The notes: generated by a model from the letters alone, not told the origin. A stretch of DNA of 63,731 bases, filler included, from Octopus bimaculoides (GCF_001194135.2; 5 parts of 4 records of this genome joined end to end with filler, not necessarily neighbours in it), one strand, 5' to 3'. Positions 354 through 23,956 are shown, numbered from the whole stretch's first letter. Numbers and translations are program-made.

Positions 354-2968
354 TTAAAAAGGGTCAAACGATGACGTGTCATGACTATCCCAGCTAGAGT
401 CTGATGTTATTATAGTATCATTGCCATGAGTGTCATGATTAGAAGTGTTATGTGAGATGCTAATTGGTTGCAGTTCAAACTTCGTTGGAGTAGTAATATT
501 TAGAATTTCTAACTTGGCCGAGTTGGTTTTAGTCTCGTCTGACGACACTGAGAAATTTGAATCAGAAAATGAAGGACGAGACAAAGTCTCAGAGGCTGGG
601 GATAAGTCTTTTCCGTTAAATTTCAAATGCTTATCGGAAGCAGCTTTCAAGTTATCTTCATTGATTTCCGACCATGAAGAAACAATATGGCTGGTGTCAA
701 CAGTTTGAGGTGAAGAAGTATCGTCTCGATGATCTTCTCCATCTAAATGATTTAGTGTTGTATCGTTATGTGCTTCTAAGGTAGTTGGCAGTAATTCGTC
801 GTTGCCAGTGGATATTTTTAAAGAAATCGGGTTTGTTAGCATACTTTTTGGAGACAAGCTTTGTGTGTCAGTCGATTGTTCGTCTTCCGTCATTTCAAAA
901 AACGCCTCGTCTTTCTTGTTGTGTTCTTCATCACTATCGGTTGATATATGTATGTCACGAGGAGAAATGTTGCGATCAGATAAATCTGGATTGTTCTCTT
1001 GTGAACTATCAAAGCTTATATCTGAATGATTCCTGTGAGCGTTGGACACGTCGGCTGGAGACTCTGTATGCAAAATATTTTGAACTTTTTTCAGTGCTTT
1101 ACTGAAAAATCCCTCCCGATGTTTTTCTTTGCTCTTTGGACTATTAGGTGAATTTAAGTCTGTATTGCCTGCTTCTGTTGAGGTTTCTAAAACATAAGAT
1201 TTGCTATTGGACGTCACGTCTTCTTTGATGAAACTGTTTATATTGGAATCGCTGGATTCGTTCAGAGTAAATTTTGTATCGGTTTCTATCGCCATGTCAT
1301 GGTTTGAATTTTTAAATGCTGAATCTATTTTAATAGAATCATTGTCTGAGTGATATGGCGAGGCTTCAGAAGTATGAACTCTTTTAGCAGCTAATTTGGG
1401 AGAATATGAATCGTCAGTCTCGCTCATTAAGGAGGAACTGTCATCCAGGCGTAAAAAGTTTGTCATAAATGGTAAAGGAAACGTTGCGTTTTGGTTTTCA
1501 CTTTCATTAATTTTCCCTCCAAATTCTTCATTTGCATTATTTTTCTTATTTCCCAAAGTAGCAAAATTATAATCATTTGAAGATGCACTACTTGAGCTCC
1601 CATCCAGTTTAAAACTTGTAGTTTTGGTGGGTTGTTTTATAAGCGACTGCATACTAAATTCATCGTCACCAAACAACGGCATAGGAAAGCTAGTGTCTAC
1701 ATTGTTTTGTGAATCATAGTTTCGGTCCCAAATCTTATTCTTGAAATTGTCATCAGTCGATAATAAACCTTTAGCCCTTTTTACTACAGAATCATTTGCA
1801 TTAGTTTCCAGTTCATCCGAAGTTAGATGGAGGTCAACGTTATTTTGAAGATCTCTACTGGGTAGATTTGTCACATCATGATCTTTTGTTAGGTCAATTC
1901 TGGTGGGAATGTCTGGTGAATCTAACTGTATGATCGCACTTTCGTCATGGCTTGGTATTTTCATCATCTCAGAATCAGAGGCAAAGCTATCGCTATCTGC
2001 AATATATTTGCTAATATTATTTTCTACGGCACCCTCATCTCTAACAAATTTTACAGGCATTGTCAATAAGTTTTCTGTAGGAGATTTTAGATGAGTCATA
2101 TCTGTTTTAGGTTCTTGTATTTCATTCAAATCGGTAAAATTGCCGTCAAAGGAAGGGATTTCTGGGGGATTTTTGAAAGGGGACTTGAGAGAAACATCTT
2201 TTTTAATTGGTGTGATTTCTGCTTCCAATTCTTTTAGAGATGGTTTTTCATTAAAAATAGTCTCAGAATTTAAACTAAAAGGGTTAACATCAGTAAAATC
2301 GTTACCCACTGATAGATTATCGGCTACAATTCCATTTGTGATATTTTTGTTTGGTATGTCATCTCTGATGTTTGGATTTTGAGAGAAAGCAGTCTGATTT
2401 GTTGTCACAGAGATTGTGTCTTCGATAGGTGTTCTATCACTAGGCAGTTTCTCCGGATTGAAGCGCGGTATATTACTCTTGTCATTTATTTTATCATATA
2501 ATTCAGAAAAATGAGCTGAATAACGTATACTTCTTTCTAGTTCTGCAAATTCACTTTCTGAATTTAGAGAGCGTTTTCTTTCGTTATCTGGAACCTCCAA
2601 TTCCAGTCCCGTTGATTTTTCTTCTGCTTCGTGTTTCAAATCTAAAAATTCTTTATCATACTTGGAAAACTGCAAATCCATTTTGTCATCGATATTTGAA
2701 ATATCTTCTCTGGATTTTAAGCTGCCGTCTGTGTTTCCATCAATCTGTGAAGCCAGAGAAGGAAAGCGTAGGTTTCGTGAATTTACCAGATTGTCTTTTT
2801 CAGGCAGAATTTTTTTCTCTTTATCAAATTTGCCAGCGCTTTCTTTTTCCGAATGGACTACTACTTCTAATGTACCTGGGCTTGGTGATATATCACATTC
2901 AGAATCGAAGAGACTGCTATTTGTAGAACCATGAAATTTGACTATAGATGAATCATGTCTCGGACTTT
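354..2968 (-). CDS. Large terminal coding exon (at least 871 aa visible, 5' part lost in the N gap 2969-3803) of an acidic Ser/Asp/Asn-rich, probably disordered protein; likely last exon of the PDZ gene
   Basis: Uninterrupted 2.6-kb reading frame in AT-rich DNA, ending ...DSSWDSHDTSSFDPF-TAA (stop 354-356). The MAT start at 3812 in the track is only read-through of the gap. Linkage to the PDZ exon is inferred from strand and position. Confidence 0.88.
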
Positions 2969-4456
2969 NNNNNNNNNNNNNNNNNNNNNNNNNNNNNNNN
3001 NNNNNNNNNNNNNNNNNNNNNNNNNNNNNNNNNNNNNNNNNNNNNNNNNNNNNNNNNNNNNNNNNNNNNNNNNNNNNNNNNNNNNNNNNNNNNNNNNNNN
3101 NNNNNNNNNNNNNNNNNNNNNNNNNNNNNNNNNNNNNNNNNNNNNNNNNNNNNNNNNNNNNNNNNNNNNNNNNNNNNNNNNNNNNNNNNNNNNNNNNNNN
3201 NNNNNNNNNNNNNNNNNNNNNNNNNNNNNNNNNNNNNNNNNNNNNNNNNNNNNNNNNNNNNNNNNNNNNNNNNNNNNNNNNNNNNNNNNNNNNNNNNNNN
3301 NNNNNNNNNNNNNNNNNNNNNNNNNNNNNNNNNNNNNNNNNNNNNNNNNNNNNNNNNNNNNNNNNNNNNNNNNNNNNNNNNNNNNNNNNNNNNNNNNNNN
3401 NNNNNNNNNNNNNNNNNNNNNNNNNNNNNNNNNNNNNNNNNNNNNNNNNNNNNNNNNNNNNNNNNNNNNNNNNNNNNNNNNNNNNNNNNNNNNNNNNNNN
3501 NNNNNNNNNNNNNNNNNNNNNNNNNNNNNNNNNNNNNNNNNNNNNNNNNNNNNNNNNNNNNNNNNNNNNNNNNNNNNNNNNNNNNNNNNNNNNNNNNNNN
3601 NNNNNNNNNNNNNNNNNNNNNNNNNNNNNNNNNNNNNNNNNNNNNNNNNNNNNNNNNNNNNNNNNNNNNNNNNNNNNNNNNNNNNNNNNNNNNNNNNNNN
3701 NNNNNNNNNNNNNNNNNNNNNNNNNNNNNNNNNNNNNNNNNNNNNNNNNNNNNNNNNNNNNNNNNNNNNNNNNNNNNNNNNNNNNNNNNNNNNNNNNNNN
3801 NNNTGTCGCCAATACAACAACCGCACTACCATATATTTTTCTTTTAAGGCGAGGTTATACCACAAATAAGGTTCCGTGACTACATGAGGCTATGGGTACA
3901 CACGTGAAGTTAGTTTTACAATATCGACCCGCAAAATCCTTAGCATCGGATTGTTTTTGGGTTGTTCTTACTTTTTTTTTGTTTTGGGAATTTTTGTTTT
4001 TTTTATTTTTAGTTCTTTTTATTATTCAAAATGTACATAGGAAATAGCCTTTAACCAAATCCACCACACTGCCCGAGTGAAACCGGGAAAAACAGCTAGT
4101 AATATATACTTTACAATGTATAGTANNNNNNNNNNNNNNNNNNNNNNNNNNNNNNNNNNNNNNNNNNNNNNNNNNNNNNNNNNNNNNNNNNNNNNNNNNN
4201 NNNNNNNNNNNNNNNNNNNNNNNNNNNNNNNNNNNNNNNNNNNNNNNNNNNNNNNNNNNNNNNNNNNNNNNNNNNNNNNNNNNNNNNNNNNNNNNNNNNN
4301 NNNNNNNNNNNNNNNNNNNNNNNNNNNNNNNNNNNNNNNNNNNNNNNNNNNNNNNNNNNNNNNNNNNNNNNNNNNNNNNNNNNNNNNNNNNNNNNNNNNN
4401 NNNNNNNNNNNNNNNNNNNNNNNNNNNNNNNNNNNNNNNNNNNNNNNNNNNNNNNN

Positions 4457-4493
<37 letters not shown>

Positions 4494-4519
4494 ACCCTCT
4501 CCTTCTGACTCTTTACATG

Positions 4520-4905
4520 CTAAGCTCAAACTCTGCCAAGGTCAACATTGCTTTTCATTATTTCGAGGTAAATAAAGTAAGTACCAGTCAAGTCAAATAC
4601 TGGGGATCAATGTAATTGGCATGCCCCTCCTCTCAACACTCTTGAACTTGTGTCTATATTGGACAGATTATTATTATTAATAAGGTGGGGAACTGGCACA
4701 ATTGTTACTGCGATTGGGAAAATGTCTTGTGGCATTTCTTCCAGTTTTAAGTTCTGAATTCAAATTCCACTGTTGTTATCTTTGCCTGTCATCCTCTTGG
4801 GGTTGATAAAACAAGTATCAGTTGGGTATTGAGGTCGATGTAATCAACTAATCCCTCCTAAAACTTTGGGCCTTGTGCTTATTGCAGACAGAAAGGATTA
4901 TCATT
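4520..4905 (+). mobile_element. Two tandem degenerate copies of SINE family C (core gtcgactttgcctttcatcc...taagtaccag)
   Basis: Motifs aaggtcaacattgcttttcat, taagtaccag and tggggatcaatgtaat repeat at 4528-4680 and 4683-4900; same family as 28951 and 30642. Confidence 0.7.
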
Positions 4906-4967
4906 ATTATGAAAACATGTGTATGTTCATAGAACAGCTAGAAATGGTGAAACTCTTGGCTACTTAC

Positions 4968-5112
4968 CGGCTCTTAACTTCCCTGATTCCTTTGCTGGTC
5001 CTCTGTTTCTTACCTCGTCAATATATATCCCTTCTCTCATATTACCTGATATGTTGAAACCAAGACCAGTGAAGTCCTGGCTTAACAAATCCGCACTTAC
5101 AATTTCCGGATC
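4968..5112 (-). CDS. Internal exon encoding the N-terminal two-thirds of a PDZ domain (periaxin/AHNAK-like type)
   Basis: Acceptor tcttttttgtctgttttAG, donor GTaagtag; 145 nt, phase 0 in and phase 1 out. Translation DPEIVSADLLSQDFTGLGFNISGNMREGIYIDEVRNRGPAKESGKLRA(G) shows the GLGF carboxylate loop, the GIYI strand and GPA..SG.L..G. Not in the ORF track because it has no start codon. Confidence 0.9.
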
Positions 5113-5419
5113 CTAAAACAGACAAAAAGATAGAAAGAAAGTAAGAAAATAAAAAAAACAATGAAAATAATTTATTGGATGACAATCGATCTCAAATAAC
5201 TCACAAGCTTTTAGGTTCATTTCATTTTGTCAAGTTACATAGAAGCCTACTAGAAATATACCCTCCTTGCTGAAAACAACGCTCAGCTGAAACGCAAAAA
5301 GTTGGTGGTTCTCGACATGGCTACAAGAAATTGTGTGAAACAAAGAGTAAAAGAATAAGCCTGATAGTATAAGAAATAATTGGAAAATATTTTATTTCCA
5401 ATATTTCAATCTAAAATGT

Positions 5420-5620
5420 AAGGCAGAATCATTAGCACACTGGTTAAAATGCTTAGTGGCATTTCATCCGCCAGCACATTCTGAGTTCAAATTCTCCCAA
5501 GATCAACTTTGCCTTTCAGGGTCAATAAAATAAGTACTAGTTGAACACTGGGGTCGATGTAATCAACTTGTCCTCTCCTATGAAATTGCTCGTCTTGCAC
5601 CAAAATTTGAAATCAATATT
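5420..5620 (+). mobile_element. SINE family C copy
   Basis: ggcagaatcattagcac...ttctgagttcaaattc...caactttgcctttc...taagtactag...ggggtcgatgtaatcaac. Confidence 0.75.
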
Positions 5621-5649
5621 TTGGTCTAAAATATAACATATTCAAGGAC

Positions 5650-6370
5650 ATTAGTATTGTGAAGAGGGTACTATCCTTGTTCGTCTCTAACTAAGCTGAA
5701 ATTTGGATGTAAATGTAATTTAGGAAACATATGACAACCTACATCGTATAAAATCTCAATTTGTGTTTTAACACCATTTAAAAAAAATAAGAATTTGCAC
5801 AAATTTATTTGGAATCTTGTTTGCCACACATTCAGCACCAGTGATGTGAGTATTTCATCAGAAGTTTTGTATTTTTTAGTAACTCTCAAATTTGAAGACC
5901 TATAAAAATCCTTCTCTTTAATTTTGGTAAAATTTAAGTTTGGAAGTATTTTTGAGAGAAATTGAAATCCTCTAGAATGTTTTTTTTTTAGTTTTAGTCA
6001 TTGCCTCAACAAATTATAACAAGTCTAATATGAAGAGATGGTTTCTTTTGGGTTAGCTAGGCTAAAGGAAAAAAACTCAATAATTGTAACAATACAGAAA
6101 GAAGATCTGTAAGGTGATCTTCAGTTCCCTCCAAAAGCAAAAGACATTGAGGGCCTCTTTTTCTTCAACTAGTCTTGCAAGCCATTTGAACACACTGCAT
6201 GAATCTGATGAGGAACTCATGGCTTGTCTTGGTCAACAAGTTGACAGTCGAAATATAGTAGCTTGTGCTTCAGTTTTTATGATCTCTTTTAACATGTTAG
6301 CATTATGATATAATTGTGAAGCTACCGTAGACATAGCAAGAAGTGTCAGGATGATTTCTACATTCCCTAA
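5650..6370 (-). mobile_element. Degenerate, internally deleted DNA-transposase relic (probably Chapaev-3/CMC-like)
   Basis: Minus-strand remnants CRNHPDTSCYVYG, LYFDCQLVDQDKP*VPHQ..CSNGLQD*LKK, IFIGLQI*E, GCHMFPKLH and DEQG follow the order of the CxNxPDxFCYxCG...GDQDKxWAPH...GIFxGPQIR...SDEQGERFHQ transposase family. The superfamily name is inference. Confidence 0.7.
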
Positions 6371-6509
6371 ACATGTAGCTAGTTTAATTAGGTTAAATTA
6401 TAATTGTTAAAAGAAACGAAAATAAATTAATAAAAGCAATATTATAGAGGAGTTGTCATAATTATGCAGTTGTTATGACTGGTTGATTTCTCCAACATAT
6501 AGAGAGGAT

Positions 6510-6557
6510 AGAAGAGAGAGAGAGAAGGAGAAAGAGAGAGAGGGGAAGAGAGAGAGG

Positions 6558-6630
<73 letters not shown>

Positions 6631-6632
6631 AG
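6510..6632. repeat. (GA)n microsatellite
   Basis: Direct reading; source of the poly-LS ORFs 6442-6719. Confidence 0.97.
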
Positions 6633-7460
6633 AGACACATAGCATAAAAGAGAGATATGGAAAGCTGCAAGATGAGTGCACATACTAAACTTTATTTCGT
6701 CATTTACTATAAGCACCAAGATTCAATAAAGGTTGAATTATAATTATTATAAATATGCCATATTTCCTTATATTTACCTATAGCGGTATAGGTGTACTTA
6801 CAATGTTATCCATTTTATGACAGGTAACACTCTAGCTTTGAGTAATAAGGTAGGTAAAGAAACAAAAAAGTAAATGATCATATCTAGAAACAATGGTACA
6901 TTCCAGGTGGGGGAATTTCAAAATCAGTGCAAAATGATATTTTAATATTCTTAAAATCATCTCAAATAAAAATTATTAGTTTGCCTATATAAACATTGAA
7001 TTATTTATTTTCGAAACAATTCCATTTTTTTTTTTTCACCAATAAATGTACAACCTTTTCTATTTACTTAGTAATTCTCTCACCATTTCGTCAAGAATGA
7101 TAACAAAGTAACTGTTCCACTGATGAGGTCAAAATAGGAACAAAACCTGAGTAGAGTTATCTTCCATACTTAACATCATTGACTGATATTGCTTTATATT
7201 TCTCATTGCACAGTTATTTCTTGCTACATGAATAAAAATATATCAACACTAAGTTAATCAGTAGCAGTAAACTTAAGAAGGTGATGAATTCGTAGAGCTG
7301 TTAGGGTTGTCGGATAGAAATCCTTTTATTAATATTTGTTCTGGCTCTGAGTTCAAATCCTGCCAAAATCTTCTTTGCCTCTCAACCCTTCTAGATTGGT
7401 AAATATATTACCAGACAAGTACTGGGAGGGAATTTTTCATTCCTTCTCTGCATGGGAGCT

Positions 7461-7992
7461 CTTTACTCTTTACTCTTTACTCTTTACTCTTTACTCTTTA
7501 CTCTTTACTCTTTTTACTCTGTTACTTGTTTCAGTCATTTGACTGCGACCATGCTGGAGCACTGCCTTTAGTCGAGCAAATCGACCCCAGGACTTATTCT
7601 TTGGAAGCCTAGTACTTATTCTATCGGTCACTTTTGCCGAACCGCTAAGTTATGGGGACGTAAACACACCAGCATCGGTTGTCAAGCAATGCTAGGGGGA
7701 CAAACACAGACACACAAACATATACACACANNNNNNNNNNNNNNNNNNNNNNNNNNNNNNNNNNNNNNNNNNNNNNNNNNNNNNNNNNNNNNNNNNNNNN
7801 NNNNNNNNNNNNNNNNNNNNNNTATATACGACGGGCTTCTTTCAGTTTCCGTCTACCAAATCCACTCACAAGGCTTCGGTCGGCCCGAGGCTATAAGTAG
7901 AAGACACTTGCCCAAGGTGCCACGCAGTGGGACTGAACCCAGAACCATGTAATTGGTAAGCAAGCTACTTACCACTCCCGCCACACCCGCTA
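7461..7992 (-). mobile_element. SINE family B copy (tRNA-like head, internal TA/TG microsatellite, (AGAGTAA)n tail)
   Basis: Reverse complement of the copy at 22876-23294; tail (TTTACTC)n at 7461-7520; internal microsatellite lost in an N gap. Confidence 0.92.
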
Positions 7993-8649
7993 TGATTTTT
8001 CAGAAACGTAAAAGGGTTCAGAGTGGGGCTAGCTACCTCTTGTAATAGAAAAACTGCCCCATGCCACAGGAACCATCCAAAGAACAAAAGTTAACTAATG
8101 ACCTATTGATTCATTGTGAATTCTCCTGTCTTAGAAATAGATGAGGGCTCCTCCATTTCTTGCTGAACAACCTGTACTGAATGATTTGATTACAGTGATT
8201 GAATGCTTGTGTTATACATCAGCACATTCCCTCCATCAAATCCACATTGCCTGAACAGATGCTCAGTTTCCTACTTGTCAGATGTCAAAGTGATTGCAGA
8301 GCAACGTTAGATGATGTGTTTTACTCAAGAACACAATGCCCCGCGCAGTCTGGGAATCGAAACCAGGGTCTTGTGATCATGAGCACAACGTCATAACCAC
8401 TACGCCACGAACCCTCACTGCTGATTATAGATTTATTGGTTACACAGTTAATTACAGTTGAATGATTTGGCAACAAATACATTTCTATATTTTGAACAAA
8501 GCACTGATGTAGATATAAAAACATGCATAGCTGTTCAATTTTAGGGTTCCTGGCTTCCTATAACTCTCATTTTTGCTGTCAGCATAGTCATAGTGTGCAT
8601 ATATGTTTGTGTATGTGTGTGAATGTGTGTATGTGTGTGTGAGGTGGAT

Positions 8650-9027
8650 GTGCAATGGCCCAGTGGTTAGGGCAGCGAACTCGCGGTCATAGGATCACGG
8701 TTTCGATTCCCAGACCAGGCGTTGTGAGTGTTTATTGAGCAAAAACACCTAAAGTTCCACGAGGCTCCAGCAGGGGTCGGTGGCGAACCATGCTGTACTC
8801 TTTCACCACAACTTTCTCTCACTCTTACTTCCTGTTTCTGTGGTACCTGTACTTCAAAGGGCCAGCCTTGTCACACTCTGTGTCATGCTGAATATCCCCA
8901 AGAACTACATTAAGGGTACACGTGTCTGTGGAGTGCTCAGCCACTTGCACGTTAATTTCATGAGCAGGCTGTTCCATCGTTCAGATCAACTGGAACCCTT
9001 GTTGTCATAACTGATGGAGTGCCACGA
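8650..9027 (+). mobile_element. SINE family A copy (tRNA-derived)
   Basis: A-box tggcccagtggttag and B-box-like ggtttcgattcc; body aligns along its length with 37563-37940. Confidence 0.9.
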
Positions 9028-9327
9028 TGTGTGTGTACTCAAGCACACACATGTACATACATACACACACACATACATACATACATACATACATACATAC
9101 ATACACACACAATGAAAAGAATAAAAACAAGTCATTGGTAGCTTAGTCTATTAGAAATAGCAGCTTATATCTTTCTTGAGTTATATATACATTATTATCT
9201 GTGGACAAAAAAAAAAGGCATGAGAAACACGTTGGATAATATAGTCCTAATACACAACATCAAAGAGAGGAACAAACCAAACATGACTGGATGAAAGTTC
9301 AACTCACTCACGGCTGTCCCAAAGCTG

Positions 9328-9351
9328 AACAACAACAACAACAACAACAGT

Positions 9352-9383
<32 letters not shown>

Positions 9384-9422
9384 AAACAACAGCAACAACA
9401 ACAACATCAACAACAACAAACA
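9328..9422. repeat. (CAA)n microsatellite
   Basis: Direct reading. Confidence 0.96.
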
Positions 9423-9599
9423 GTAAACTGGAACTTACTTGCAAAAAGCTATTCAGAGAGCAATATGAACCATACTCGGTGCCAGCAAACTGCACTTTGG
9501 GAAGTGAATTCCAGTCTTTCTTGCTTAGAGAGCTCGGACCATTATATGAAGCGAGGGTCTGGATTTAAACATGTATTGGTCATTTATTAAGGTTTACTT

Positions 9600-9850
9600 G
9601 TATGCATGCATGCATGCTTACATACATACACACACACATATATATTTATAAATGTATATATAAATATATGCATACATAAAGGCACACACACATAGATACA
9701 TACATACACACATACATACATACATTCATACATACATACATACATACATACATACATACATTCATACATACATTCATACATACATACATACATACATACA
9801 TACATACATACATACATTCATACATACATACATACATACATACATACACC
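9600..9850. repeat. (TACA)n/(CA)n compound microsatellite
   Basis: Direct reading; source of the MYVC ORFs. Confidence 0.96.
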
Positions 9851-10283
9851 TGAATATATATATATTTGTATGTGCAGGGTGGGACACATTTCACTGGTTG
9901 ACAAATGTTTTAACAACAAACACACAATTTATAATAGTCAAACTGCAATGGTAACTAATAAAACGGTAAAATATTATCTACATGAAGACTCCATTACCAT
10001 CTAACTAACCTTACTAGTGCCACATTAACGAGCATGTAAAATGTGGGAGGTTTTTCTGTCGCACTCTCTCTCTTTCTCTCTTTCTATGTATGTGTGTCTG
10101 CATGTGTGATGTATGTATATATGAGAAATACTGCAAGAGACAATAAAATAATTACAATTCATAAGGCCACAGACAGCCAACTGCACCTATCGTATGTATC
10201 ATATTCCACCTTTCCAAAGTCTTTGAGAGAGAATCATAGGCAGAAAGAGAATAGTGTAGAAAAAAAGATGTTCTTTTTTAACA

Positions 10284-10710
10284 ATGGTGGACTTTGCAGA
10301 TGATACAGCAATCATATCTGATAAGATAGATCAAGCACAGCAGCTGCTCAGGAGAGTAGAAGCATCAGCTATCAAAATTGGACTAAATACAAATGTCAAG
10401 AAAACCGAACACACGTCTTTCAACCGATCAAGTGATGCTGAACTTTTTACTCTGAGCGGTTACAAATTTGATGTTGTTGAAAACTTCAAGTACTTAGATG
10501 GATGAGTGAACAGTTTGGAAGCAGACATTAAGATCAGGAAGGTACAAGTATGGACAGCCTGTCACAAGCAAAAGGTCTGGAACTCCAAACTGCCAAGGCG
10601 AATCAAAATCAAGCTGTACATCGCAACTGTCAAATAAGTGCTGTTATATGGCAGTGAAACATGGACACTGATAAAGAAATTATCAAATGGGCTTGATGGC
10701 TGCTTTGCAA
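10284..10710 (+). mobile_element. Non-LTR retrotransposon RT C-terminal fragment (RTE-like)
   Basis: DFADDTAII catalytic motif, ENFKYLDG, then EADIKIRK...VLLYGSETWTL after a stop codon. Confidence 0.88.
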
Positions 10711-10720
10711 TATTTTTTAA

Positions 10721-10940
10721 CCCTTTCGTTACTGTATTTATTTTGAGATGCTCTGTGTCTCTTTCAATTACTTTAAATATACAAAAGAATTTAGTAAAAT
10801 AACTTAATTATCATTAAGCTAGTGTTAGGAACATAAATTGTGACTAAGGTTTGGTGGAAGATTTTAATTCAAAACTTATGAAAACAAGACATTTGTACTC
10901 AGACTCAGAGCCGGTTTCAGCCGGGCTGGTAACGAAAGGG
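10721..10940. mobile_element. piggyBac-type MITE, 220 bp
   Basis: TTAA target duplication at 10717-10720 and 10941-10944; perfect 12-bp TIRs CCCTTTCGTTAC...GTAACGAAAGGG. Confidence 0.9.
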
Positions 10941-11149
10941 TTAACACAACCTTAAAACTTTTCTGGAGGTGACAATACTCTGCACAGTTACTTAATAACA
11001 ACCCAAAACTGTAGGAAAAGCAGCATACAACATTAACAATGAGATGAATATATAGAAAACAGCATAAACTAGATAACAGACTGAAGACCATCATAAAGTA
11101 GGAAGCATAAGGAAAATGTTTACCTTAAACCCTAAACCTAGATAAAAAC

Positions 11150-12480
11150 TTGATGAAAATTTTAAATAATTTCAACAATAATATTAGGAAGGCTATCAAC
11201 CTCTAGTGATGCAACATGGTTGGTTTATCAGTATTAGTTATAAGCATAACTCTCAAATTATCCAATTTGACATTGCCAAATTTAGCCTTTCATCTCTAAA
11301 TCTGAAGTGCTTAGAGTTCACAAAGAAAGACTTATAAAACAATAAAAGATAAAGGAACTGAGATTATCAATCATGTTAGATATCACTCAATTTTGACAAA
11401 GATTCTGACTGGGTAAAATCTGACCACTCTAGTACTGTTGAAGTAAGCATGGGGGATTATGATAGCATAGAGATATGAAAGCTTCTAGGATTATATATCC
11501 TGGATATACAAAGCAAGAGGCTTACTTCAAAAGACATTGATTCTTATAAAGACACTTTGTCAGCTATATCCAAATAAGCCAACTAACACACATTAGCTAT
11601 ATTAAGGGATAACCTTATCTACACATTTAGGGTACATTTTATATGCTGAATTTAACAATAAACTTTTATAAAACTTTTAGTAAACCTAATGAAAAACTTA
11701 TGTTAAGATAGGCTCCTGCCACATACCCTTAAAATTTTTAAATCTCAAAACGGTACAAGAATTTTCATTTTACTCTTAAAGAAGGAAATCTTTGCTGAAA
11801 GTTTCTTTACTCAAATAATATCTTGGAAGCGAACAAATTCAAAGATAAAATTGCATTTGCTACCAGCCTTGCCAACTCAAAAATAGTAAAAAGTGACAAA
11901 ACATACTCTGCTTTACACTTCCTATTTTTATTAAACATTAAGTCAAATATTCATTAAAACCTTTTCAGTATTAACTGATAACCACTTCTCACCAACTATA
12001 AATTTAGAAAAATATATAATGGATATGATTTAAATAAACGTACAGTTGCACAACCATTATGAACTTCACTATATTGCATATGCTTCCAAAAATATGGCTC
12101 TGATTGTATATGCAGAGATACCAGCATAAGTTTACACAATATGTCATGCAACACAGGCTTCATTACAAATGAAACTGAAGCTGATCCACCAAAGTAAACT
12201 AAACCAAATTTCAACAAAGCACATAAACGCTATATAAGCATGACAGAAGGGACATATAATTCGAAAAATAACTATCATACTTCTTTGAAACACATTAAAA
12301 AAAAGAAATGTGAGAAAGTTATCCAATTATATCTGGCAATTAAAAGATAACTCTTCTTTTATAAATGCCAATTATTAAAGATTGTAACCTTAAATGAATG
12401 CTAATGAAGTTAAAATCTCTGCACAGTTGAAAAAGGTCTCACCCTTAAAAACCTATATAATTCTCATGGTGAATTCTAGT
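11150..12480 (+). mobile_element. Degenerate Penelope-like retroelement (RT plus GIY-YIG endonuclease)
   Basis: MGDYDSIEI*KLLGLYIL at 11449 resembles the PLE motif MGSYDGAEICELVGLYIL; YISMTEGT...HTSLKH...LSNYIWQLKDN from 12231 resembles the GIY-YIG region. Confidence 0.78.
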
Positions 12481-12693
12481 TTTTGGAAAATGTAAACAAT
12501 TTGACATGAACCTGTTCTATAAGTGGACCCTACTACTATTACTAGATCAAACAGAACACACTAACATTATTCACTAGATCACAATATCTATTTCTTTTAT
12601 TAATTAATGTCTATATATTTTGTAGGCATATGTATGTATTGCTCTGTAATTGTTATCAAGTGAATGTCTGCTTGCATGTGTGTGTGTGTGTGT

Positions 12694-13426
12694 AGTCGTA
12701 AATGACAGAGAAATATTTAGATGAGTCTTTATTTAACGATAAAAAATCCAAATATCATGGCAAATTTGTTTCATAACTAAAAAAAACCAAGTAAATAACT
12801 TATATTATCATATTCATCATCATCATCATCATCATCATCGTTTAACGTCCGCTTTCCATGCTAGCATGGGTTGGACGATTTGACTGAGGACTGGTGAAAC
12901 CGGATGGCAACACCAGGCTCCAGTCTGATTTGGCAGAGTTTCTNNNNNNNNNNNNNNNNNNNNNNNNNNNNNNNNNNNNNNNNNNNNNNNNNNNNNNNNN
13001 NNNNNNNNNNNNNNNNNNNNNNNNNNNNNNNNNNNNNNNNNNNNNNNNNNNNNNNNNNNNNNNNNNNNNNNNNNNNNNNNNNNNNNTTTGTTTCATAACT
13101 AAAAAAAACCAAGTAAATAACTTATATTATCATATTCAATAATAAATAAATTACTTACATATCTGCACTGACACAAAATGTAAAAAAATCTTTTCAAAAT
13201 GATGCAGAATTTGAGTTATGTCATGGCTCAAATTCTGCATCATTTTGAAAAGATCTTTTTACATTTTGTGTCAGTGCAGATATGTAAGTAATTTATTTAT
13301 TATTAAATATGATAATATAAGTTATTTACTTGTTTTTTTGAGTTATGAAAAAAATTTGTCGTGATATTTGGATTTTTTTATCATTAAATAAAGATTCATC
13401 TAAATATTTTTCTATCATTTATGACT
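12694..13426. repeat. Fold-back (hairpin) element with ~200-bp arms and an 11-bp spacer, left arm interrupted
   Basis: Right arm 13227-13426 is the near-perfect reverse complement of 12694-12815 joined to 13139-13215. Confidence 0.9.
12816..12943 (-). mobile_element. Young RTE-associated 3' end with (GAT)n tail (truncated by gap)
   Basis: (CAT)n-cgtttaacgtccgctttccatgctagcatgggttggacg..., near-identical to 19325, 61125 and 61579. Confidence 0.88.
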
Positions 13427-13608
13427 TTATATAATCCTTATCCTTGTCTTTTGTATATTTACTATATATTCTATATCGTTTGTACAGTGACACATTAAGG
13501 AGCTTTTTTATGAGTACTACCGGATTACGTGAATTTATATATTGTAACTTAAATTTGTATGTATGTATGTATAAACTGTATTATATACATGCATACATAC
13601 ATACATAC

Positions 13609-13640
<32 letters not shown>

Positions 13641-13759
13641 ATGTATATATATGTATATTGTGTGTGCGTGTGTGTGTGTGTACATATATGATATAATATC
13701 CAATGTAATACATACAGTATGTATAAGTATCATATATTTCTATACATACATACAAACAT

Positions 13760-13778
13760 CCATATCTATCTATCTATC

Positions 13779-13853
<75 letters not shown>

Positions 13854-13856
13854 ATG
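13760..13856. repeat. (TCTA)n microsatellite
   Basis: Direct reading. Confidence 0.96.
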
Positions 13857-14266
13857 TATATATATTAGTGTGTACAACACACACGCACTCATATATTTGT
13901 TTGTTTTGTGTCCATTTCTCCAAACCAGCATGGGTTAGACAGCTATATAACCGAACCATTATTTTACAGCCAGATGCCCTTTATGTCACTAACTCTCGAC
14001 TGTTTTGTGTAGAGCACAAACATAGAAAAAAAAACATAGTGAAGTACAGTTAGTTCTGTCTACCAAATTCATTCACAAAGCTTTGATCGGCCCATAGAGA
14101 ACACTTGCTCAAGTTGCCAAGCAGTGGGACTGTACTCGAAGCCACATGATTTGGAATCGAATTTCTTTGTCCCACGGCCATGCCTGTGCCTCTGGGCATT
14201 ATGTATGTGTATGTATGTATGTGTGTGTGTGTGTGTGTGTATGTGTGTGTGTGTATGTGTGTGTGT

Positions 14267-14302
<36 letters not shown>

Positions 14303-15800
14303 TTATCCCTTATGTAATACATCCCTGTCAAATTCCTATTTGATTCTCTCTTGTCTCTTAAATACTATCTCATCCCCATTACCTATCTGTCAATCATCTC
14401 TATTGTTCTTGCTTTCTTTCTCAGTCACCTATATGCTTACCATTCATGCTCTCTCTGCCTAATTTTCTGCTATTTTCTGCCATGTAGCTACAAGCGCCAT
14501 TGGCTCTGTCAGACCCTCTCGTCTCTCAAGTACTCACTCTCTCCACTTTGACTTCTCTCCTATTCCCTGCATCATGTCACCTGTCTAGTGAGGGAGAGTA
14601 TTGAAGATGTGAACATTCTACCTCCATCCTATAAACCCTACCTCATTCTCCCATTCAGACTCCAACATATGGAAGGTAGTATCAGACCTGTTCGTATCTG
14701 ATATACCCAACCATTACAATTTCTGTGTCATCAACCATCACTACTTCTCCTCCAGTTCATTTGCTATTGCCATCAGTCGTCTTTGCTTATCATCGCCTTT
14801 TACGTATACTATCTCTCGATCTCACTCCTGCACTAAGAAACAAGCAACTACCATAAGTATCTTTCTTCCATTACTCTTTCAGCAGTGTCACTCTTACATC
14901 ACTCCTACTTAATGACACTCATACTACAGTTACTCTATTTTTTCCATCATGTGTTCACATTTCTTTCCTTGCTATTAGTCATGTTGCCTTGATTGAACAG
15001 AGGCATCTCAGTGTTGAGAAGGTTTTTTTTACTTTTGTCGAGGATATGAAAATTATTTTAATGTTGGCAGAATGATAATATGAATCTAGTACATTTTGTA
15101 AAATGGTTAATACAATGAAGAGTATCCATTGGCAGAAAGGATGCCAAAATTTTGGAATATATTAACAAGATGTGAGTCTCTGACCTATCTAGAGGATGAA
15201 TACGGCTGAATAAGAACTAATTTAAATAATGATAACTCATCCTACCCATGTCAACATGTAAAGCAAATTTAATATGATATTGACAATGAAGTGTACACAT
15301 AAATACATATATGTCTATATATACATGTGGTATATGTGAGTGTGTGTCTGCATGTGTATGTGGCCTAATGGTTAAGGTGTTATTCCTGGTAAATACTCAA
15401 GAATGGGTTTACTCAGTTAAGTGATGTGAATTCTTCTAGTGCTTCAGTAGGTACTTGTGGAAATGGCAATATTTCACGTAGTGATCTGGTCTATCATTCA
15501 GAAAGTCTATGGATTTATTAGAGTTAATAAGTATGAGGCTATACATAACTTATAACATTTTGTATGATTTCAGTATGACTTGCATCTCTCAATTATAATA
15601 TGACACACACATACACACATACATTAATGTATTCATGCATACATATATTTATACAGTGAACATTCATTTATATATATATATATATATATATATGCATAGC
15701 TAAATAGATTGATAAATAGACATAGATATAATATATAATCCATAACATGAATATATATTTCATAATATACCTAACATATATAAAACATAAATGCATGCAT

Positions 15801-15890
<90 letters not shown>

Positions 15891-16247
15891 TCAACATCAT
15901 CACCAAGAACATCATCATAATTTTACATTTGTGTGTCATGTTCTCATTCGTTGGGCAATATATAATATATATGATATTTAATAACATATATATGTAATTT
16001 ATATGTGTATGTGTGCATGTATATAATATTTATGTAGTGTATAGTTAAATATGTATCTATATAACATATGAAATATATAACATATAATATATGCAATATA
16101 TAAAAATATATCATAAATATATTTGTATGTGTGTATGAAGTTGTATGTATCATCATCATCATCGATATCATTAGAAATAACATCATCATTTCCTGGATCT
16201 TTGATGGGTTGGCCTGGAAGATATCTACCTATCTATCAATCTACGTG

Positions 16248-16280
<33 letters not shown>

Positions 16281-16474
16281 ACACAGAGACACACACACAC
16301 ACATACATACATATATATAAACATACATACATAATACATACATACATACATACATATGTATATGTATATATNNNNNNNNNNNNNNNNNNNNNNNNNNNNN
16401 NNNNNNNNNNNNNNNNNNNNNNNNNNNNNNNNNNNNNNNNNNNNNNNNNNNNNNNNNNNNNNNNTATATATATC

Positions 16475-16725
16475 GTGGTTTCAATTCCTAGACCGAGTGG
16501 TGCATTGTACTCTTGAGCAAAACACATCATCTCATGTTGTCCTGTGATCATTTCGCCACCTCATGTGTGGTACACCGTGCACCTCTTCAGGCAATGTCGA
16601 TTTAATGGAGAGAGATAGCTAATGTGTAGCACAAGCATTTGATCACTATAAACAAACCATTTGTGAAGGTTGTTTGGCAAAAGCGGAATGCTCATACGTC
16701 ATCTTCGACAGGAGAGTGTGCATAT
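16475..16725 (+). mobile_element. SINE family F copy
   Basis: gtggtttcaattcctagacc...cttgagcaaaacacatcatctc...gctaatgtg; aligns with 25668-26015. Confidence 0.75.
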
Positions 16726-16810
16726 GTACATTTACATACTCACACACACATACACACACGCATTTGTGTGTGTGTGTGTGGTGTGTGTGTTTGTATATGT
16801 GTATGTGTAT

Positions 16811-17240
16811 CTTTCATTTTACTTGCTTCAGTCAGTAGACTGTGGCCATACTGGGGCACCACCTTGAAGAATTTTTTAGTTGATTGTATCAACTCCTGTA
16901 CTTATTTTTAAAACCTAGTACTTATACTACCAGTCTCTCTTGCCGAACCGCTAAGTTATGGGGATGTAAATACACCAGCACCAGTTGTGAGGCAGTGGTA
17001 AGGGGACAACCACAGACGGAAAAACACACACACACATATATATGTACACACACACACACACACACATATATAAATATATATACACACACATACACACATG
17101 CACATATATATGACAGGTTTCTTTCAGTTTCAGTGTCAGCCTGGGGCTATAGTAGAAGACACTTGCTCAAGGTGACACTCATTGGGACTGAACCCAGGAC
17201 CATGTGATTGGGAGGCAAGCTTCTTACCACACAACCACAC
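16811..17240 (-). mobile_element. SINE family B copy, diverged
   Basis: Same motif order as 7461-7992 (gccgaaccgctaagtt, gggactgaaccc, aagcttcttaccacac). Confidence 0.85.
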
Positions 17241-17699
17241 CTAATAATGCACTACATGCAATTCTGGATAATTTGAAATGCAATATAAAGTCTACAATTG
17301 TTGATAACTTTAACTTCATCTTAGTGTCTTTTATTTAAAATATTCCTTCTATAGCATCTCTTTATCGCCTTGTGCCTGTCCTCTTGTTAGGAATCCTCTT
17401 TGGCTTCTTCTAAGTAGACTAGTAAGAAGACATATCTATGAGGTAGATGATGATGATCATAGTGAAGAGGATGATGATAATAAAGATTATGATGATGATA
17501 AAGATTATGATGATGATGGTGGTGGTGGTGGTGGTGACGATGTCGATGACAAGGACAATGATGACAACGGTGATGTTTAAGACAATGATGGTGTTGGTAA
17601 TGATAATGTAGATGACAATGACAGTGTTGTTCATGATGATAATGATGACAACGCCGACGACAACAACAACAACGATGATGAGAATAACGTTAGTGGTGG

Positions 17700-18125
17700 T
17701 GATCATATCATTTGGTATGGCTACATCAATGATCTGACAGTATTTGTCTCTCCTATTCACTATGACAATATCCAGCCGACAGTGTTCGATTACACGATCC
17801 ATCTGAAAATCATGGTCCCAGAGTATCGTTACTTTTCCATTCTCCTGCATAACTTTATTTGGTACATGATCATATCAGTTCTCTGTTACTTCATATTCGT
17901 ATCTCATGCATAAAAGCCAAAGATGTTACACACACACTTTATCGTTGTAGCACTTGTATTCTTTTTGTGCAAGGATCCCACATTTACTTACCAAGTGGGT
18001 CACATTTTCCACGCTCTTTCCACAGAGTCTGCATTTCTGGGTGTCAGAAGTTTTATAGATGTTATATTTCACTAACTTGGTAGTGAGAGCCTGGTCTTGT
18101 GCAGCAAAGATCAGGCTTATTATTA
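17700..18125 (-). mobile_element. R4/Dong-like non-LTR retrotransposon fragment (CCHC knuckle plus restriction-like endonuclease)
   Basis: LIFAAQDQAL...KCRLCGKSVENVTHLVSKC and ILWDHDFQMDRVIEHCRLDIVIV...IIDVAIP. Confidence 0.87.
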
Positions 18126-18146
18126 TTATCATTATCATTATTCTTA

Positions 18147-18193
<47 letters not shown>

Positions 18194-18644
18194 GAGTGAG
18201 AGAGCAGTGCGTGCCATCAAAGTGACACTGGGGTAAAATATACGAAGCCCAATATACCCATTGTGACTACCCGTCTGATAAGGGTACACCAGGCACATGC
18301 ATCACAACCATATGTACGCGACATGGTGATCTCATATCAAGATAAACAGCGCATGACCTCGCAGGTGGGGCCCAGTTAGAATTTTCTTCAGCTTGAGTAG
18401 CCCATCTTGCTCAAATGGTCCTTGAATATGGTTTGTTTAAGGATGTTGAGCAAAACACTCATGTTTCCAAAGGTGAATTATTCAAACTCCAAAGAATTCC
18501 TCTCAACACATGGCTATGATGCTCCCCCCTACTTCTGCTCATGATCAGAGATGCACATATTGTCAGCCACCAAGGGACATGCTCAACTGGTTAAGGTCAA
18601 ACAACTGACAAGCAAATCTGTGGTATTGAGCAGAATATTTTCTG

Positions 18645-18645
<1 letters not shown>
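18194..18645 (-). mobile_element. Non-coding interspersed element with (AAT)n tail, flanked by (TTA)n
   Basis: Non-coding 450-bp block between two (TTA)n arrays, next to the R4/Dong fragment; the non-autonomous status is inference. Confidence 0.55.
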
Positions 18646-18707
<62 letters not shown>

Positions 18708-18882
18708 TATTGTTGTTGTGATTAAAAGTGTTGATAATGATGATGATGAAGATGATGATGATGACGACGATGACGACGACAATGATGACTTGTTAAATCA
18801 GTTAGGAATCCCACCCACCAAAAAGGGAAAAAAATTAAAATGTACAAAATAAAACAAACAAGCATAATAAACAATCACATAC

Positions 18883-18923
18883 CTTGTTTGGAGAGTGGTG
18901 GTCCTTAATAGATTCAGAAATCC
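18883..18923 (-). CDS. Probable 41-nt internal exon of the minus-strand PDZ gene
   Basis: Strong acceptor (ttttttttcttttcAG) and donor (AAG/GTatgt). The frame (G)ISESIKDHHSPNK ends in phase 0, compatible with the phase-0 start of the PDZ exon. No homology support. Confidence 0.6.
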
Positions 18924-19324
18924 CTGAAAAGAAAAAAAAGTTAAATTAACACTTTGTATATTCATAAATCTAAAATGAAATAAATTAGGTTTAAATTATG
19001 AAGGTCAAACTGGTTCAATAATTTGAAAATACAATGATAAGAAGACTTTCTAATTTCAGCACCAGGCCAGCAATATGAGTGAAGGAGGTAAGTTAAGGTC
19101 TTTGACCCCAGTATTTGGCTATGCTCAAGCAAAGGTTTTAAGTCAAGGGTGGTTTACACAACACTGCAATGACTCACATTCATAATATCAAGGAACCTGG
19201 ATACAAGCAAAGTGAAAGATAACTGGTTCAGTGGAACAGAGGGTCTTATATACAAGCTGGCCTTCTTTTAGATTCATCATCATCATCAATGCTTTAACCA
19301 CAAACTCCTGTATCCTTGATGTCA

Positions 19325-19510
19325 TTCATCATCATCATCATCATCATCATCGTTTAACGTCCGCTTTCCATGCTAGCATGGGTTGGACGATTTGACTGAG
19401 GACTGGTGAAACCAGATGGCTACACCAGGCTCCAATCTGATTTGGCAGAGTTTCTACAGCTGGATGCCCTTCCTACCGCCAACCACTCAGAGAGTGTAGT
19501 GGGTGCTTGT
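19325..19510 (-). mobile_element. Young RTE-associated 3' end with (GAT)n tail
   Basis: Near-identical to 12816 and 61125. Confidence 0.88.
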
Positions 19511-20344
19511 CACATGAAAATCAACATCACACAGTGATTGACCACAATGGCCCATTGAATTGCAGTCCATCTGACAAACTGCCATAGTTTCCATCTACCC
19601 AAATTACACTTACCTAGGCTTTAATAAAAGATGCATGCAAAGAAATTGAATCTAGAATCTCAGATTGTGAGATAAACTTAGTGAGATTCAGTAGTGATGA
19701 TGTGTCCACATATAGAAGAAGCGGCCAAAAAAATCTCTCTTGCATTTTACAGTTTGATAAACATTACAACTGAAAACACCAGTTATACATCAGCTTAAAC
19801 CACAATATTAACTGTTAAAAAAAAACATTGAAATATTAGCTACACGATGACACTATTATCATTTTCCTATCTTCCCTAGCACCACAACAATAGTCATGTA
19901 AAATACGGGAGGTTTTTCTGCTGCACACTGTTTAAGGCTATGAATGTTAACTGAGTGTTAGTGTTACATGCATATATTACACTTTTTTCTCATTCATTTG
20001 TATAGAGAAAAGGTGGAATGATTTTTTGCATTGATCAGTGTTCTTCTGACCAGCTGGCTGCCAGCTTGTTTTTGTTGGCAACCACTCCTTTATACACATT
20101 GTAATTGATTGATGCAGTTGTTGCTGTTGTTATTATTATTGTGACTGCTGCTGTTGTTGTTGTTGTTGTGGTGGTGGTTTAGCCACAGGTCAACCTGGTA
20201 AAAACAAATCTACGATCACAAGCATTCAGAATGTGACAATCCCATCTTAATTTTTGTGTGTAGTGATATCTAGAACTACATCATTAACTGTGTATTTCCT
20301 TATATATATATTTTTTTAAAGATAGTATGGTGTGATTTGGTGGA

Positions 20345-20585
20345 GGTGCGTGGCTTAGTCGTTAGGGTGTCAGCATCATGATCATAAGATTGTGGTTTCG
20401 ATTCCTGGACTGGCCAACGCGTTGTGTTCTTGAGCAAAACACTTGATATCACGTTGCTCCAGTCCACTCAGCTGGCAAAAATGAGTAGCGCTGCGATGGA
20501 CTGGTGTCCCATTCAGCTGGGAACACATACGCCATTGAAACCAGGAAACCGGGCCCACGAGCCTGGCTAGGCTTTAAAAGGGCGC
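20345..20585 (+). mobile_element. tRNA-derived SINE (head related to family E)
   Basis: A-box tggcttagtcg, B-box-like ggtttcgattcc, then ttcttgagcaaaacac...ctccagtccactcagctg shared with 34393. Confidence 0.75.
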
Positions 20586-20954
20586 ATTTATTTATTTTTT
20601 TTTTTATGGTGTAATTTGCAGGAGAAGGAAGATTTGGCTGCTATTTCTAACAATTTGTGTGACAAGGTATGTACTCCTTTATTGGTTTATCCTGATGTCC
20701 TTTTGTACATATAGGCAGAGTCTATAAAAGAAGAGATCAGCAAGTACATCAGTCCAAGGCCTGGTCAGACAAGGCAGAACCTGTGACCTAACAGAAAAGA
20801 AAATAACTAAAAAAATCTCACTCCCCTCTGCAATTTTGGAAGGACTCTCCCCCTACCCAGTGGGGGTAGGGTGAGGGAAACTAGGAGTAGACTTACTGTA
20901 CCTTGACAGCAAAGAATATTGGAAGGAGTATGGGAGAAGGAATATTGCCTTACT

Positions 20955-21222: not shown

Positions 21223-21244
21223 TCATCTATAGCTATTTTGTGAT

Positions 21245-21635: not shown

Positions 21636-21644
21636 CTTCTAATA

Positions 21645-21848: not shown

Positions 21849-22875
21849 NNNNNNNNNNNNNNNNNNNNNNNNNNNNNNNNNNNNNNNNNNNNNNNNNNNN
21901 NNNNNNNNNNNNNNNNNNNNNNNNNNNNNNNNNNNNNNNNNNNNNNNNNNNNNNNNNNNNNNNNNNNNNNNNNNNNNNNNNNNNNNNNNNNNNNNNNNNN
22001 NNNNNNNNNNNNNNNNNNNNNNNNNNNNNNNNNNNNNNNNNNNNNNNNNNNNNNNNNNNNNNNNNNNNNNNNNNNNNNNNNNNNNNNNNNNNNNNNNNNN
22101 NNNNNNNNNNNNNNNNNNNNNNNNNNNNNNNNNNNNNNNNNNNNNNNNNNNNNNNNNNNNNNNNNNNNNNNNNNNNNNNNNNNNNNNAAAATACCTTCCT
22201 CTGCCTGAATGCTTTCATTCTGATCTGAGAATGCTGGGTTATCAAGAGGTTTTGCTCTGGGAGATTTTCTCATATGTTTAACTGTAAATAGAAGTAAAAA
22301 AATAGAAGAAAATCAATTATAAGGATTCTTTACATTTACACAAGACATCTATGATTAAGGCAAAAAAAAAACCCCCCAAAAAACCCCAGACAAACAAAAA
22401 TACAAGTATGACCAGAAAAACCACGTAACTGTAATCTTTTGTGATTATCTTTATTTAATAATAGTTTCTATAACTGTTGGTCCATTGGTGGATTTCTCCA
22501 AACATGTTTTATATTATATAGATACAAGGGGAGACTGAAAGACACATACACAGAATTAACATTAAAGGTACTAAATAAGTGCATACTAGGCTTGGTGACA
22601 GGCAATGAGTAAGAAAAGCACTAACCAATTAATTAATTAATGGAACAGTTACCACCTCAGTCATTCTTGTTAGACCACAAAACCTATTCATTATTTGTCT
22701 GATTACTGTTATATTCTGTGATTAATGTACCAACCTAACAATTGGTGAATGAAAACATTGTGCCATTTTTAAGTGGTGTCAACATAAAAGCAGACATGAA
22801 AATGAACACACACAGACATACACACAATATATATATATTGATATATATTGATATAAATATATATATTGATATATA

Positions 22876-23884: not shown

Positions 23885-23956
<72 letters not shown>

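Follow-up and report, generated by a model that had tools for sequence, protein, structure and literature searches.

A giant-exon gene of Octopus bimaculoides carries a periaxin/AHNAK2-type PDZ domain and probably belongs to a protostome family of membrane-anchored proteins

Introduction

Is an octopus gene that pairs a PDZ-coding exon with one giant terminal exon an invertebrate relative of periaxin and AHNAK, and of what kind would such a relative be? The question is raised by a stretch of 63,731 nucleotides (nt) from Octopus bimaculoides (GCF_001194135.2; five parts of four records of the genome joined end to end with filler), hereafter called the window, in which an earlier note made from the sequence alone had read positions 354-18923 as small PDZ exons followed by a giant last exon. 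The explanation that we favour, and consider probable as a whole, is that the gene is the orthologue of O. sinensis LOC115217417 and encodes a single-pass membrane protein with a PDZ domain of the periaxin/AHNAK2 type, belonging to a protostome-wide family with the layout transmembrane segment (TM), NPxF motif, PDZ domain and long tail.

According to a 2020 review, the periaxin PDZ domain is structurally unlike those of all other PDZ proteins but AHNAK2, named there as the only protein homologous to periaxin in sequence (PMC7072810). The AHNAK family is given two members in a 2023 review (PMC10682155). We found no paper on invertebrate periaxin or AHNAK homologues. The family described here appears to be unstudied, and its link to the vertebrate proteins has so far been implicit in automatic names such as "periaxin-like". 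Our sequence comparisons show that the same PDZ subtype and the same intron occur in a conserved protostome family of proteins predicted to be anchored in the membrane.

Results

Exons of the octopus gene

Every feature of the octopus gene described here is carried by the minus strand. Three sequences served for comparison, namely the proteins of O. sinensis LOC115217417 isoform X2 (P0002) and Argonauta hians LOC115217417 isoform X1 (P0004), and an open reading frame (ORF) from another octopod's genomic contig (P0003, locus L001). Of the octopus orthologue of O. sinensis LOC115217417, the window holds exons 2 to 6, and exon 1 lies outside it. The mapped features are as follows.

22281..22195, minus strand: exon 2, 87 nt, phase 1 to 1, encoding (V)KHMRKSPRAKPLDNPAFSDQNESIQAEE(G), a predicted cytoplasmic juxtamembrane stretch
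22240..22229, minus strand: NPAF motif within exon 2 (longer form LDNPAF, 22246..22229)
18923..18883, minus strand: exon 3, 41 nt, phase 1 to 0, encoding (G)ISESIKDHHSPNK
9558..9439, minus strand: cassette exon, 120 nt, phase 0 to 0, encoding TLASYNGPSSLSKKDWNSLPKVQFAGTEYGSYCSLNSFLQ
5112..4968, minus strand: PDZ N-half exon, 145 nt, phase 0 to 1, encoding DPEIVSADLLSQDFTGLGFNISGNMREGIYIDEVRNRGPAKESGKLRA(G)
2969-3803: gap in the assembly, into which fall the acceptor and roughly the first 257 nt of the giant exon; the remainder is intron
2968..354, minus strand: giant terminal exon as far as it is visible, with 870 sense codons and a stop codon at 356..354

Exon 2 (acceptor tatttacag, donor gtatttt, the donor lying six bases before the gap at 21849-22187) matches both P0002 and P0004 in the orthologue mapping; it is part of the same gene and lies beyond the 354-18923 range. 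The first base of exon 3 is 18923, the upper limit of that range, and this exon (acceptor ttttcag, donor gtatgtg) is 92% identical to residues 92-104 of P0002 as judged by tblastn. The cassette exon (acceptor aaatccag, donor gtaagt) matches residues 104-145 of P0004. Argonauta isoform X1 and the public model P0035 include it, isoform X2 of O. sinensis skips it, and the earlier note makes no mention of it. The W..LP motif that it encodes recurs throughout the family, for example as KKTWTSLP in gastropods and KWxxWSPL in insects. The PDZ N-half exon (acceptor ttttag, donor gtaagt) is 90% identical to residues 106-154 of P0002 and contains the peptide TGLGFNISGNMREGIYIDEVRNRGPAKESGKLRAG, which starts at position 5070 and reads downward on the minus strand. 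The earlier note had correctly taken this 145-nt exon to encode half of a PDZ domain and had placed a terminal exon of at least 2.6 kb on the same strand, where 2968..354 is indeed open for 871 codons including the stop. Its plural "PDZ exons" has to be amended: there is one small PDZ exon, and the other half of the domain lies within the giant exon.

The upstream end of the terminal exon meets the gap at 2969, and the window alone cannot show continuity across 2969-3803. Judging from the orthologues, the hidden stretch corresponds to residues 155-241 of P0002, that is, to the PDZ C-half and a linker. In the gap-free octopod contig L001, the acceptor cag/GT GAT TTA ATC... (the slash marks the exon boundary) precedes a sequence encoding (G)DLIKEVSISFKNIVFKDALAILGYASPYPVK that is contiguous with the long ORF, position 466 of the contig aligning with window position 2967, and at the Argonauta locus (L002) the same cag/GT GAT junction opens the giant exon in phase 1. 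The phase-1 acceptors of both loci match the window donor at 4968. Because the L001 and Argonauta junctions show this arrangement, we regard the PDZ C-half as part of a giant exon that starts in phase 1. A C-half of the form D..L..I.ISFEN..YEDAL..L..A.PY with a phase-1 start had been predicted for the gap, and the orthologues match that prediction closely (DLIKEVSISFKNIVFKDALAILGYASPYP). Together with the roughly 257 nt in the gap, the giant exon contributes about 2.87 kb to the coding sequence, whose total length is about 3.3 kb.

Exon phases are mutually consistent across the five mapped exons, and all residues of the orthologues could be located in the window, bar exon 1 and the stretch inside the gap at 2969-3803. 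The gaps at 4126-4456, 7731-7822, 12944-13086 and 16372-16464 fall within introns. Exon 1 was not found in the window; searching by tblastn for the N-termini of the orthologues, and scanning 22282-27193 for ORFs of hydrophobic character, gave only microsatellite artefacts. Intron 1 is 34 kb long in Argonauta. The public model P0035 (130 residues, window 4968-22273, minus strand) is identical to exons 2 and 3, the cassette exon and the PDZ N-half exon, and therefore lends independent support to the mapped splicing. Its end reads past the donor into the intron (...LRAGK, then a stop), and we consider it an annotation that was truncated because of the assembly gap.

The long ORF shares 85% identity with O. 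sinensis P0002, 74% with P0003 and 43% with Argonauta P0004, and the ratio of nonsynonymous to synonymous substitution rates (dN/dS) between the window tail and L001 is 0.47 over 865 codons. Since the ORF is similar to three orthologues and shows this dN/dS value, sequence conservation indicates that it is genuine coding sequence.

Subtype of the PDZ domain

The Pfam PDZ model recognised the 145-nt exon (E=1.1e-4, 22.9 bits) through positions 11-46 of its 81, which make up the N-terminal half only, and the score falls slightly below the 23.2-bit cut-off set for the whole domain. The alignment of the window peptide with periaxin, on which the earlier note had relied, proved not to discriminate: the 49 residues of the window alone had Dlg-family PDZ3 domains as their best PDB matches (24-25 bits), with periaxin at rank 27 (18.9 bits). 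With the complete PDZ domain of O. sinensis, the best single-domain PDB matches were periaxin (4CMZ, 41.8 bits) and AHNAK2 (4CN0, 40.2 bits), the next scoring 32 bits. A best match in another PDZ family had been named as the outcome that would speak against the proposal; it is obtained with the window peptide by itself, whereas the full domain taken from the orthologues leads to periaxin and AHNAK2.

Profiles gave the same result in both directions. One built from 22 family PDZ domains and searched against solved PDZ domains in the PDB gave AHNAK2 as the top single-domain match (68.2 bits), followed by periaxin (64.6 bits), with the next single PDZ domain at 48.9 bits; the alignment spans the full length of the domain with one 1-residue indel. 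For the reverse comparison, a profile of 45 vertebrate PRX/AHNAK2 sequences was used, with 157 PDZ domains of 16 multi-PDZ proteins as a control. The protostome family reached a median of 51.9 bits (octopus 41.3) against a control maximum of 26.6, and the forward profile on the same sets gave a family median of 64 against a control maximum of 39.7. Run against the database, the PRX plus AHNAK2 profile returned only vertebrate sequences among the just 276 candidates that passed the word filter. Of the four family members scanned, three gave no Pfam alignment in the C-half, and because in these the model aligns just to the N-half, we consider the C-half to be the family-specific part of the domain. 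The family's PDZ domain is, by these sequence comparisons, the apparent closest relative of the vertebrate periaxin/AHNAK2 PDZ domain.

The intron that divides the domain agrees with this assignment. In bird AHNAK2 (L003), the N-half exon is 142 nt long, runs from phase 0 to 1 and ends in GAA G/gt, to be followed by cag/GT GAT CAG; in mammalian PRX (L004), the exon is 157 nt long, again runs from phase 0 to 1 and ends in GAA G/gt, and read-through ORFs of PRX show ...SPAG/DQLLSARVFF. The phase-1 intron in the glycine codon of GD thus has the same position and phase in the window, L001, Argonauta and bird AHNAK2, with the same donor codon in mammalian PRX. A comparison of intron positions with PRX had been proposed beforehand, and it came out in favour of relatedness, as the same phase-1 intron splits the PDZ domain in AHNAK2 and PRX.

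In order to compare structures, the PDZ domain of O. sinensis was modelled with AlphaFold from a 22-sequence alignment (predicted local distance difference test score, pLDDT, 88.5; a model from a 3-sequence alignment, with pLDDT 49, was discarded). The terminal segments of the model are unpaired, and the five PDB chains that match it best all belong to the intertwined homodimers 4CMZ and 4CN0, with template modelling scores (TM-scores) of 0.68-0.79 against periaxin (4CMZ) and 0.70-0.76 against AHNAK2 (4CN0); canonical PDZ domains reach at most 0.50. In silico, the protomer matches the open conformation expected of an intertwined (domain-swapped) dimer. Taken together, profiles, reciprocal scores, intron and structure establish that the PDZ domain is of the periaxin/AHNAK2 subtype.

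Predicted layout of the protein

In the orthologues P0002 and P0004, exon 1 encodes two hydrophobic segments about 8 residues apart, the one at residues 6-26 being signal-peptide-like and the one at residues 31-57 a strong transmembrane candidate followed by RRYQR. After exon 1 comes the NPAF motif; the PDZ domain, a linker of the conserved form HP-x-[YF]-RS and the tail follow it. We therefore predict a type-I protein of about 1,100 residues that crosses the membrane once, with a minimal ectodomain, a PDZ domain on the cytoplasmic side and a disordered tail of about 900 residues. All three cephalopod orthologues carry [YF]ASPY and the linker; the window itself shows the GLGF half only, the remainder being in the gap. 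The LDNPAF of octopus exon 2, which is FDNPxF in most relatives, looks like a phosphotyrosine-binding (PTB)-type sorting or adaptor signal by analogy with the FDNPVY signal of the low-density lipoprotein (LDL) receptor and the NPxY/F motifs of integrins.

Most family members (P0007, P0008, P0010, P0025, P0041 and others) have a conserved Cys within the very short ectodomain just before the TM, in the form C-[YF]-x-x-G, which is absent from the cephalopod orthologues seen here (O. sinensis P0002 and Argonauta P0004). Where present, this Cys could form a disulphide-linked dimer.

A protostome-wide family

A profile running from exon 2 to the linker was searched against 1.84 billion proteins, and 94 family representatives were recovered at E<1e-30. 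More than 80 of the 94 have a TM at about residues 20-50, x-N-P-x-F at about residues 80-100 (often FDNPxF) and [YF]ASPY exactly 57 residues past GLGF; total lengths are mostly 600-1,600 residues. Molluscs are represented by the gastropods Pomacea and Haliotis ("periaxin-like") and the bivalve Solemya, crustaceans by Daphnia sinensis (3,688 residues), Macrobrachium ("AHNAK-like") and the barnacles Amphibalanus ("Periaxin") and Pollicipes. Beetles, an orthopteran, mosquitoes, a tick and a mite add further arthropods, and there is a tardigrade member; nematode members come from Caenorhabditis brenneri, Heterorhabditis, Pristionchus and Plectus, and others from a nematomorph, a priapulid and rotifers. 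The gene is not peculiar to cephalopods but one member of a protostome-wide family. No TM-bearing deuterostome occurs among the representatives whose names could be looked up. A Pfam scan of four members returned PDZ only and no further domains.

The Daphnia sinensis protein P0044 (GHT06_022475, 3,688 residues) joins a TM, an NPCF motif and the PDZ domain to an AHNAK-like repeat tail with 25 MPK[FLMI] motifs. On sequence grounds, it is the best single hint that an AHNAK-type tail and a membrane anchor may once have coexisted.

The acidic tail

The 870 tail residues visible in the window are of low complexity, rich in S, D, N, E, T and K, and acidic (D+E 158 vs K+R 88). The tail ends in ...SSFDPF, and the orthologues share the position of the stop codon. 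Tandem Repeats Finder reported no tandem repeats (no rows), self-BLAST gave only the identity match and thus no internal repeats, no Pfam domain matched, and no MPK[FLMI] motif is present, compared with 25 in Daphnia P0044. In BLAST searches, the octopus tail was similar only to other cephalopod tails. A few islands are strongly conserved, the clearest of which is also the most conserved short motif:

917..843, minus strand: KKDEAFFEMTEDEQSTDTQSLSPKS, conserved in Argonauta and nearly identical in the squid-like protein P0121

Its acidic tract together with AFFEMTE resembles what we take to be an FFAT-like motif, and the C-terminal ..SSFDPF (window 357-365, minus strand) contains what is presumably a DPF motif. 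The squid-like protein retains the molluscan W-S-G-K-R-L...S-F-S-E motif, and because it does, the tails appear to be homologous yet fast-evolving.

Comparison with periaxin, AHNAK proteins and closer relatives

The direct orthologues, O. sinensis and Argonauta hians LOC115217417 (RefSeq "uncharacterized protein"), have the exon set, the cassette exon and the C-terminus in common with the octopus gene and show no difference in kind, except that the window copy is without exon 1 and has its PDZ C-half inside the gap. The proteins of Haliotis, Amphibalanus, Macrobrachium and Daphnia share the TM-NPxF-PDZ layout and the spacing of GLGF and [YF]ASPY. Non-cephalopod members differ in having tails without detectable similarity to the octopus tail, which in Daphnia consist in part of AHNAK-like MPKF repeats.

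Periaxin (PRX), a vertebrate Schwann-cell scaffold, resembles the octopus family in its PDZ-like subtype with the signature F-E-N-x-x-Y-E-D-A-L...PY and in having a phase-1 intron that interrupts the Gly codon ahead of D. It differs in that the PRX sequences examined show no signal peptide, TM or NPxF, in a loop reading GVSGINV instead of the octopus GLGF, and in one further intron, which separates the PDZ C-half exon from exon 7. Like the octopus protein, it consists for the most part of a disordered tail that a single giant last exon encodes, and its C-terminal region is acidic; unlike the octopus tail, the PRX tail contains PEVK-type repeats and an AHNAK2-homology region (PMC7072810). AHNAK2 shares the identical G/gt..ag/GT GAT junction in birds, and the AHNAK genes have small 5' exons and a single giant exon (PMC10682155). 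AHNAK proteins carry tandem repeats of 128 or 165 residues (PMC10682155), in contrast to the repeat-free octopus tail, and are not described as membrane-spanning, whereas the octopus orthologues are predicted to be membrane-anchored through exon 1.

Of the features of the periaxin/AHNAK family, the octopus gene has the PDZ subtype (in the full domain of the orthologues), the phase-1 intron and one giant 3' exon. The repeat tail is lacking, and a membrane-spanning segment is, going by the orthologues, probably present. The proposal of an invertebrate family member thus holds for the PDZ subtype, the intron and the giant last exon and fails for the architecture as a whole, with its signal peptide, TM, NPxF and repeat-free tail. 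Because the protein is repeat-free and predicted to be membrane-spanning, we assign the gene to a protostome sister family and do not call it an "invertebrate periaxin".

Contents of the introns

The introns contain interspersed repeats in both orientations (80-250 nt, 62-98% identity), one family of which has tRNA-like GGTTCGATTCC boxes and looks like short interspersed nuclear elements (SINEs). They are also rich in CA, TA and 8-nt microsatellites. The features noted are:

7499-7975, 16906-17243, 21642-21860, 22873-23294, 25314-25653: interspersed repeat copies
8661-8742, 20356-20437, 24234-24315, 25672-25753: further interspersed repeat copies
17419-17850, minus strand: intronic ORF of 143 codons (..ILWDHDFQMDRVIEHCRLDIVIVNRRDKYCQIIDVAIP..) followed by a low-complexity I/V/T run, no Pfam match
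13103-13339: near-perfect palindrome of two 118-nt arms, 96% complementary and 1 nt apart, adjoining the gap at 12944-13086

The ORF at 17419-17850 looks like the remnant of a transposable element, and the palindrome may be a genuine hairpin repeat or else an artefact of fold-back in the assembly.

Discussion

The favoured explanation makes the octopus product a protein with, in order, a signal peptide, an ectodomain of about 8 residues, a TM helix, a cytoplasmic [FYL]-x-N-P-x-F motif, a PDZ-like domain and an acidic, disordered, repeat-free tail. Such a protein would act as a membrane-anchored cortical scaffold. Its PDZ-like domain would form intertwined homodimers by strand exchange, as in periaxin and AHNAK2; by analogy, the NPxF motif may bind sorting or adaptor proteins of the PTB type, and short motifs of the disordered tail could recruit partners beneath the membrane. 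Several points weigh against this explanation. Exon 1, with the signal peptide and TM, and the PDZ C-half are unreadable in the window and were taken from orthologues, and scaffold function, PTB binding and dimerisation are things that we infer. The position of the phase-1 GD intron is uncalibrated against other PDZ families. AlphaFold was trained on 4CMZ and 4CN0, so that the open protomer may partly be recall, and the model is of a protomer only. Lastly, the cephalopod PDZ domain keeps the canonical GLGF loop, which is absent from periaxin and AHNAK2, and because of this it may still bind C-terminal ligands like an ordinary PDZ domain.

That loop also lends some colour to the reading of the domain as an ordinary canonical PDZ of the Dlg, Scribble, MPDZ or PDZD2 type with a merely generic resemblance to periaxin, as do the good alignment of the Pfam model on the N-half and the preference of the 49-residue window peptide for Dlg-family PDZ3. 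Once the C-half is added from orthologues, periaxin and AHNAK2 lead the single-domain matches by 8-19 bits, Pfam PDZ misses the C-half in most of the members scanned, and reciprocal profiles, common intron and structural match all favour PRX/AHNAK2; we regard this reading as largely refuted and very improbable. Still harder to credit is the idea that the PDZ exon and the long ORF are two genes, or that the ORF is non-coding or pseudogenic, with the gap masking the fact. The window cannot bridge the gap, and P0035 stops at the PDZ N-half, but the latter end is donor read-through and a truncation artefact. Moreover, RefSeq models of two other species join PDZ and tail, L001 and L002 hold the C-half and tail in one exon, and the 870-codon ORF is open in three species with the dN/dS value given above.

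The alternative with the most in its favour holds that only the PDZ domain is homologous, an ancient subtype held in common, for example through exon shuffling, by genes that are not orthologous and that gained their giant last exons independently. It accommodates the vertebrate AHNAK2 and PRX N-termini, which show no TM or NPxF, the additional PRX intron between PDZ C-half and giant exon, the cephalopod tail that lacks AHNAK-type repeats and MPK[FLMI] motifs and resembles cephalopod tails alone, and the want of a TM-bearing deuterostome among the named representatives. It fits less well with the flanking exon structure common to the three genes, in which the N-half exon runs from phase 0 to 1 with lengths of 145, 142 and 157 nt and the C-half opens a long downstream coding region, or with the Daphnia protein P0044, which combines TM, NPxF and PDZ with 25 MPK[FLMI] motifs, and the prawn member that was automatically named AHNAK-like. 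On balance we think this alternative unlikely, though far from negligible, and retain membership in the TM-NPxF-PDZ-long-tail family as the better account of the octopus gene.

A wider proposal can be put forward tentatively, as one that may well be right but that we would not yet call probable: AHNAK, AHNAK2 and periaxin would descend from an ancient bilaterian single-pass membrane protein with a signal peptide, TM, FxNPxF, swapped-dimer PDZ domain and giant disordered tail, of which the anchor exon was lost, and the protostome family, the octopus gene among its members, would keep the ancestral form.

For the octopus gene, the analysis provides a better annotation, with five mapped exons, an explanation of the truncated public model and exon 1 identified as the missing part. 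If whole-gene orthology is true, it would supply an origin for the giant vertebrate scaffolds AHNAK and PRX, and simple model organisms in which to ask what roles the domain-swapped PDZ domain and disordered tail had before myelin. Should the protostome family indeed keep the ancestral form, that pre-myelin function would be testable in tractable protostomes such as nematodes, beetles, Daphnia and mosquitoes.

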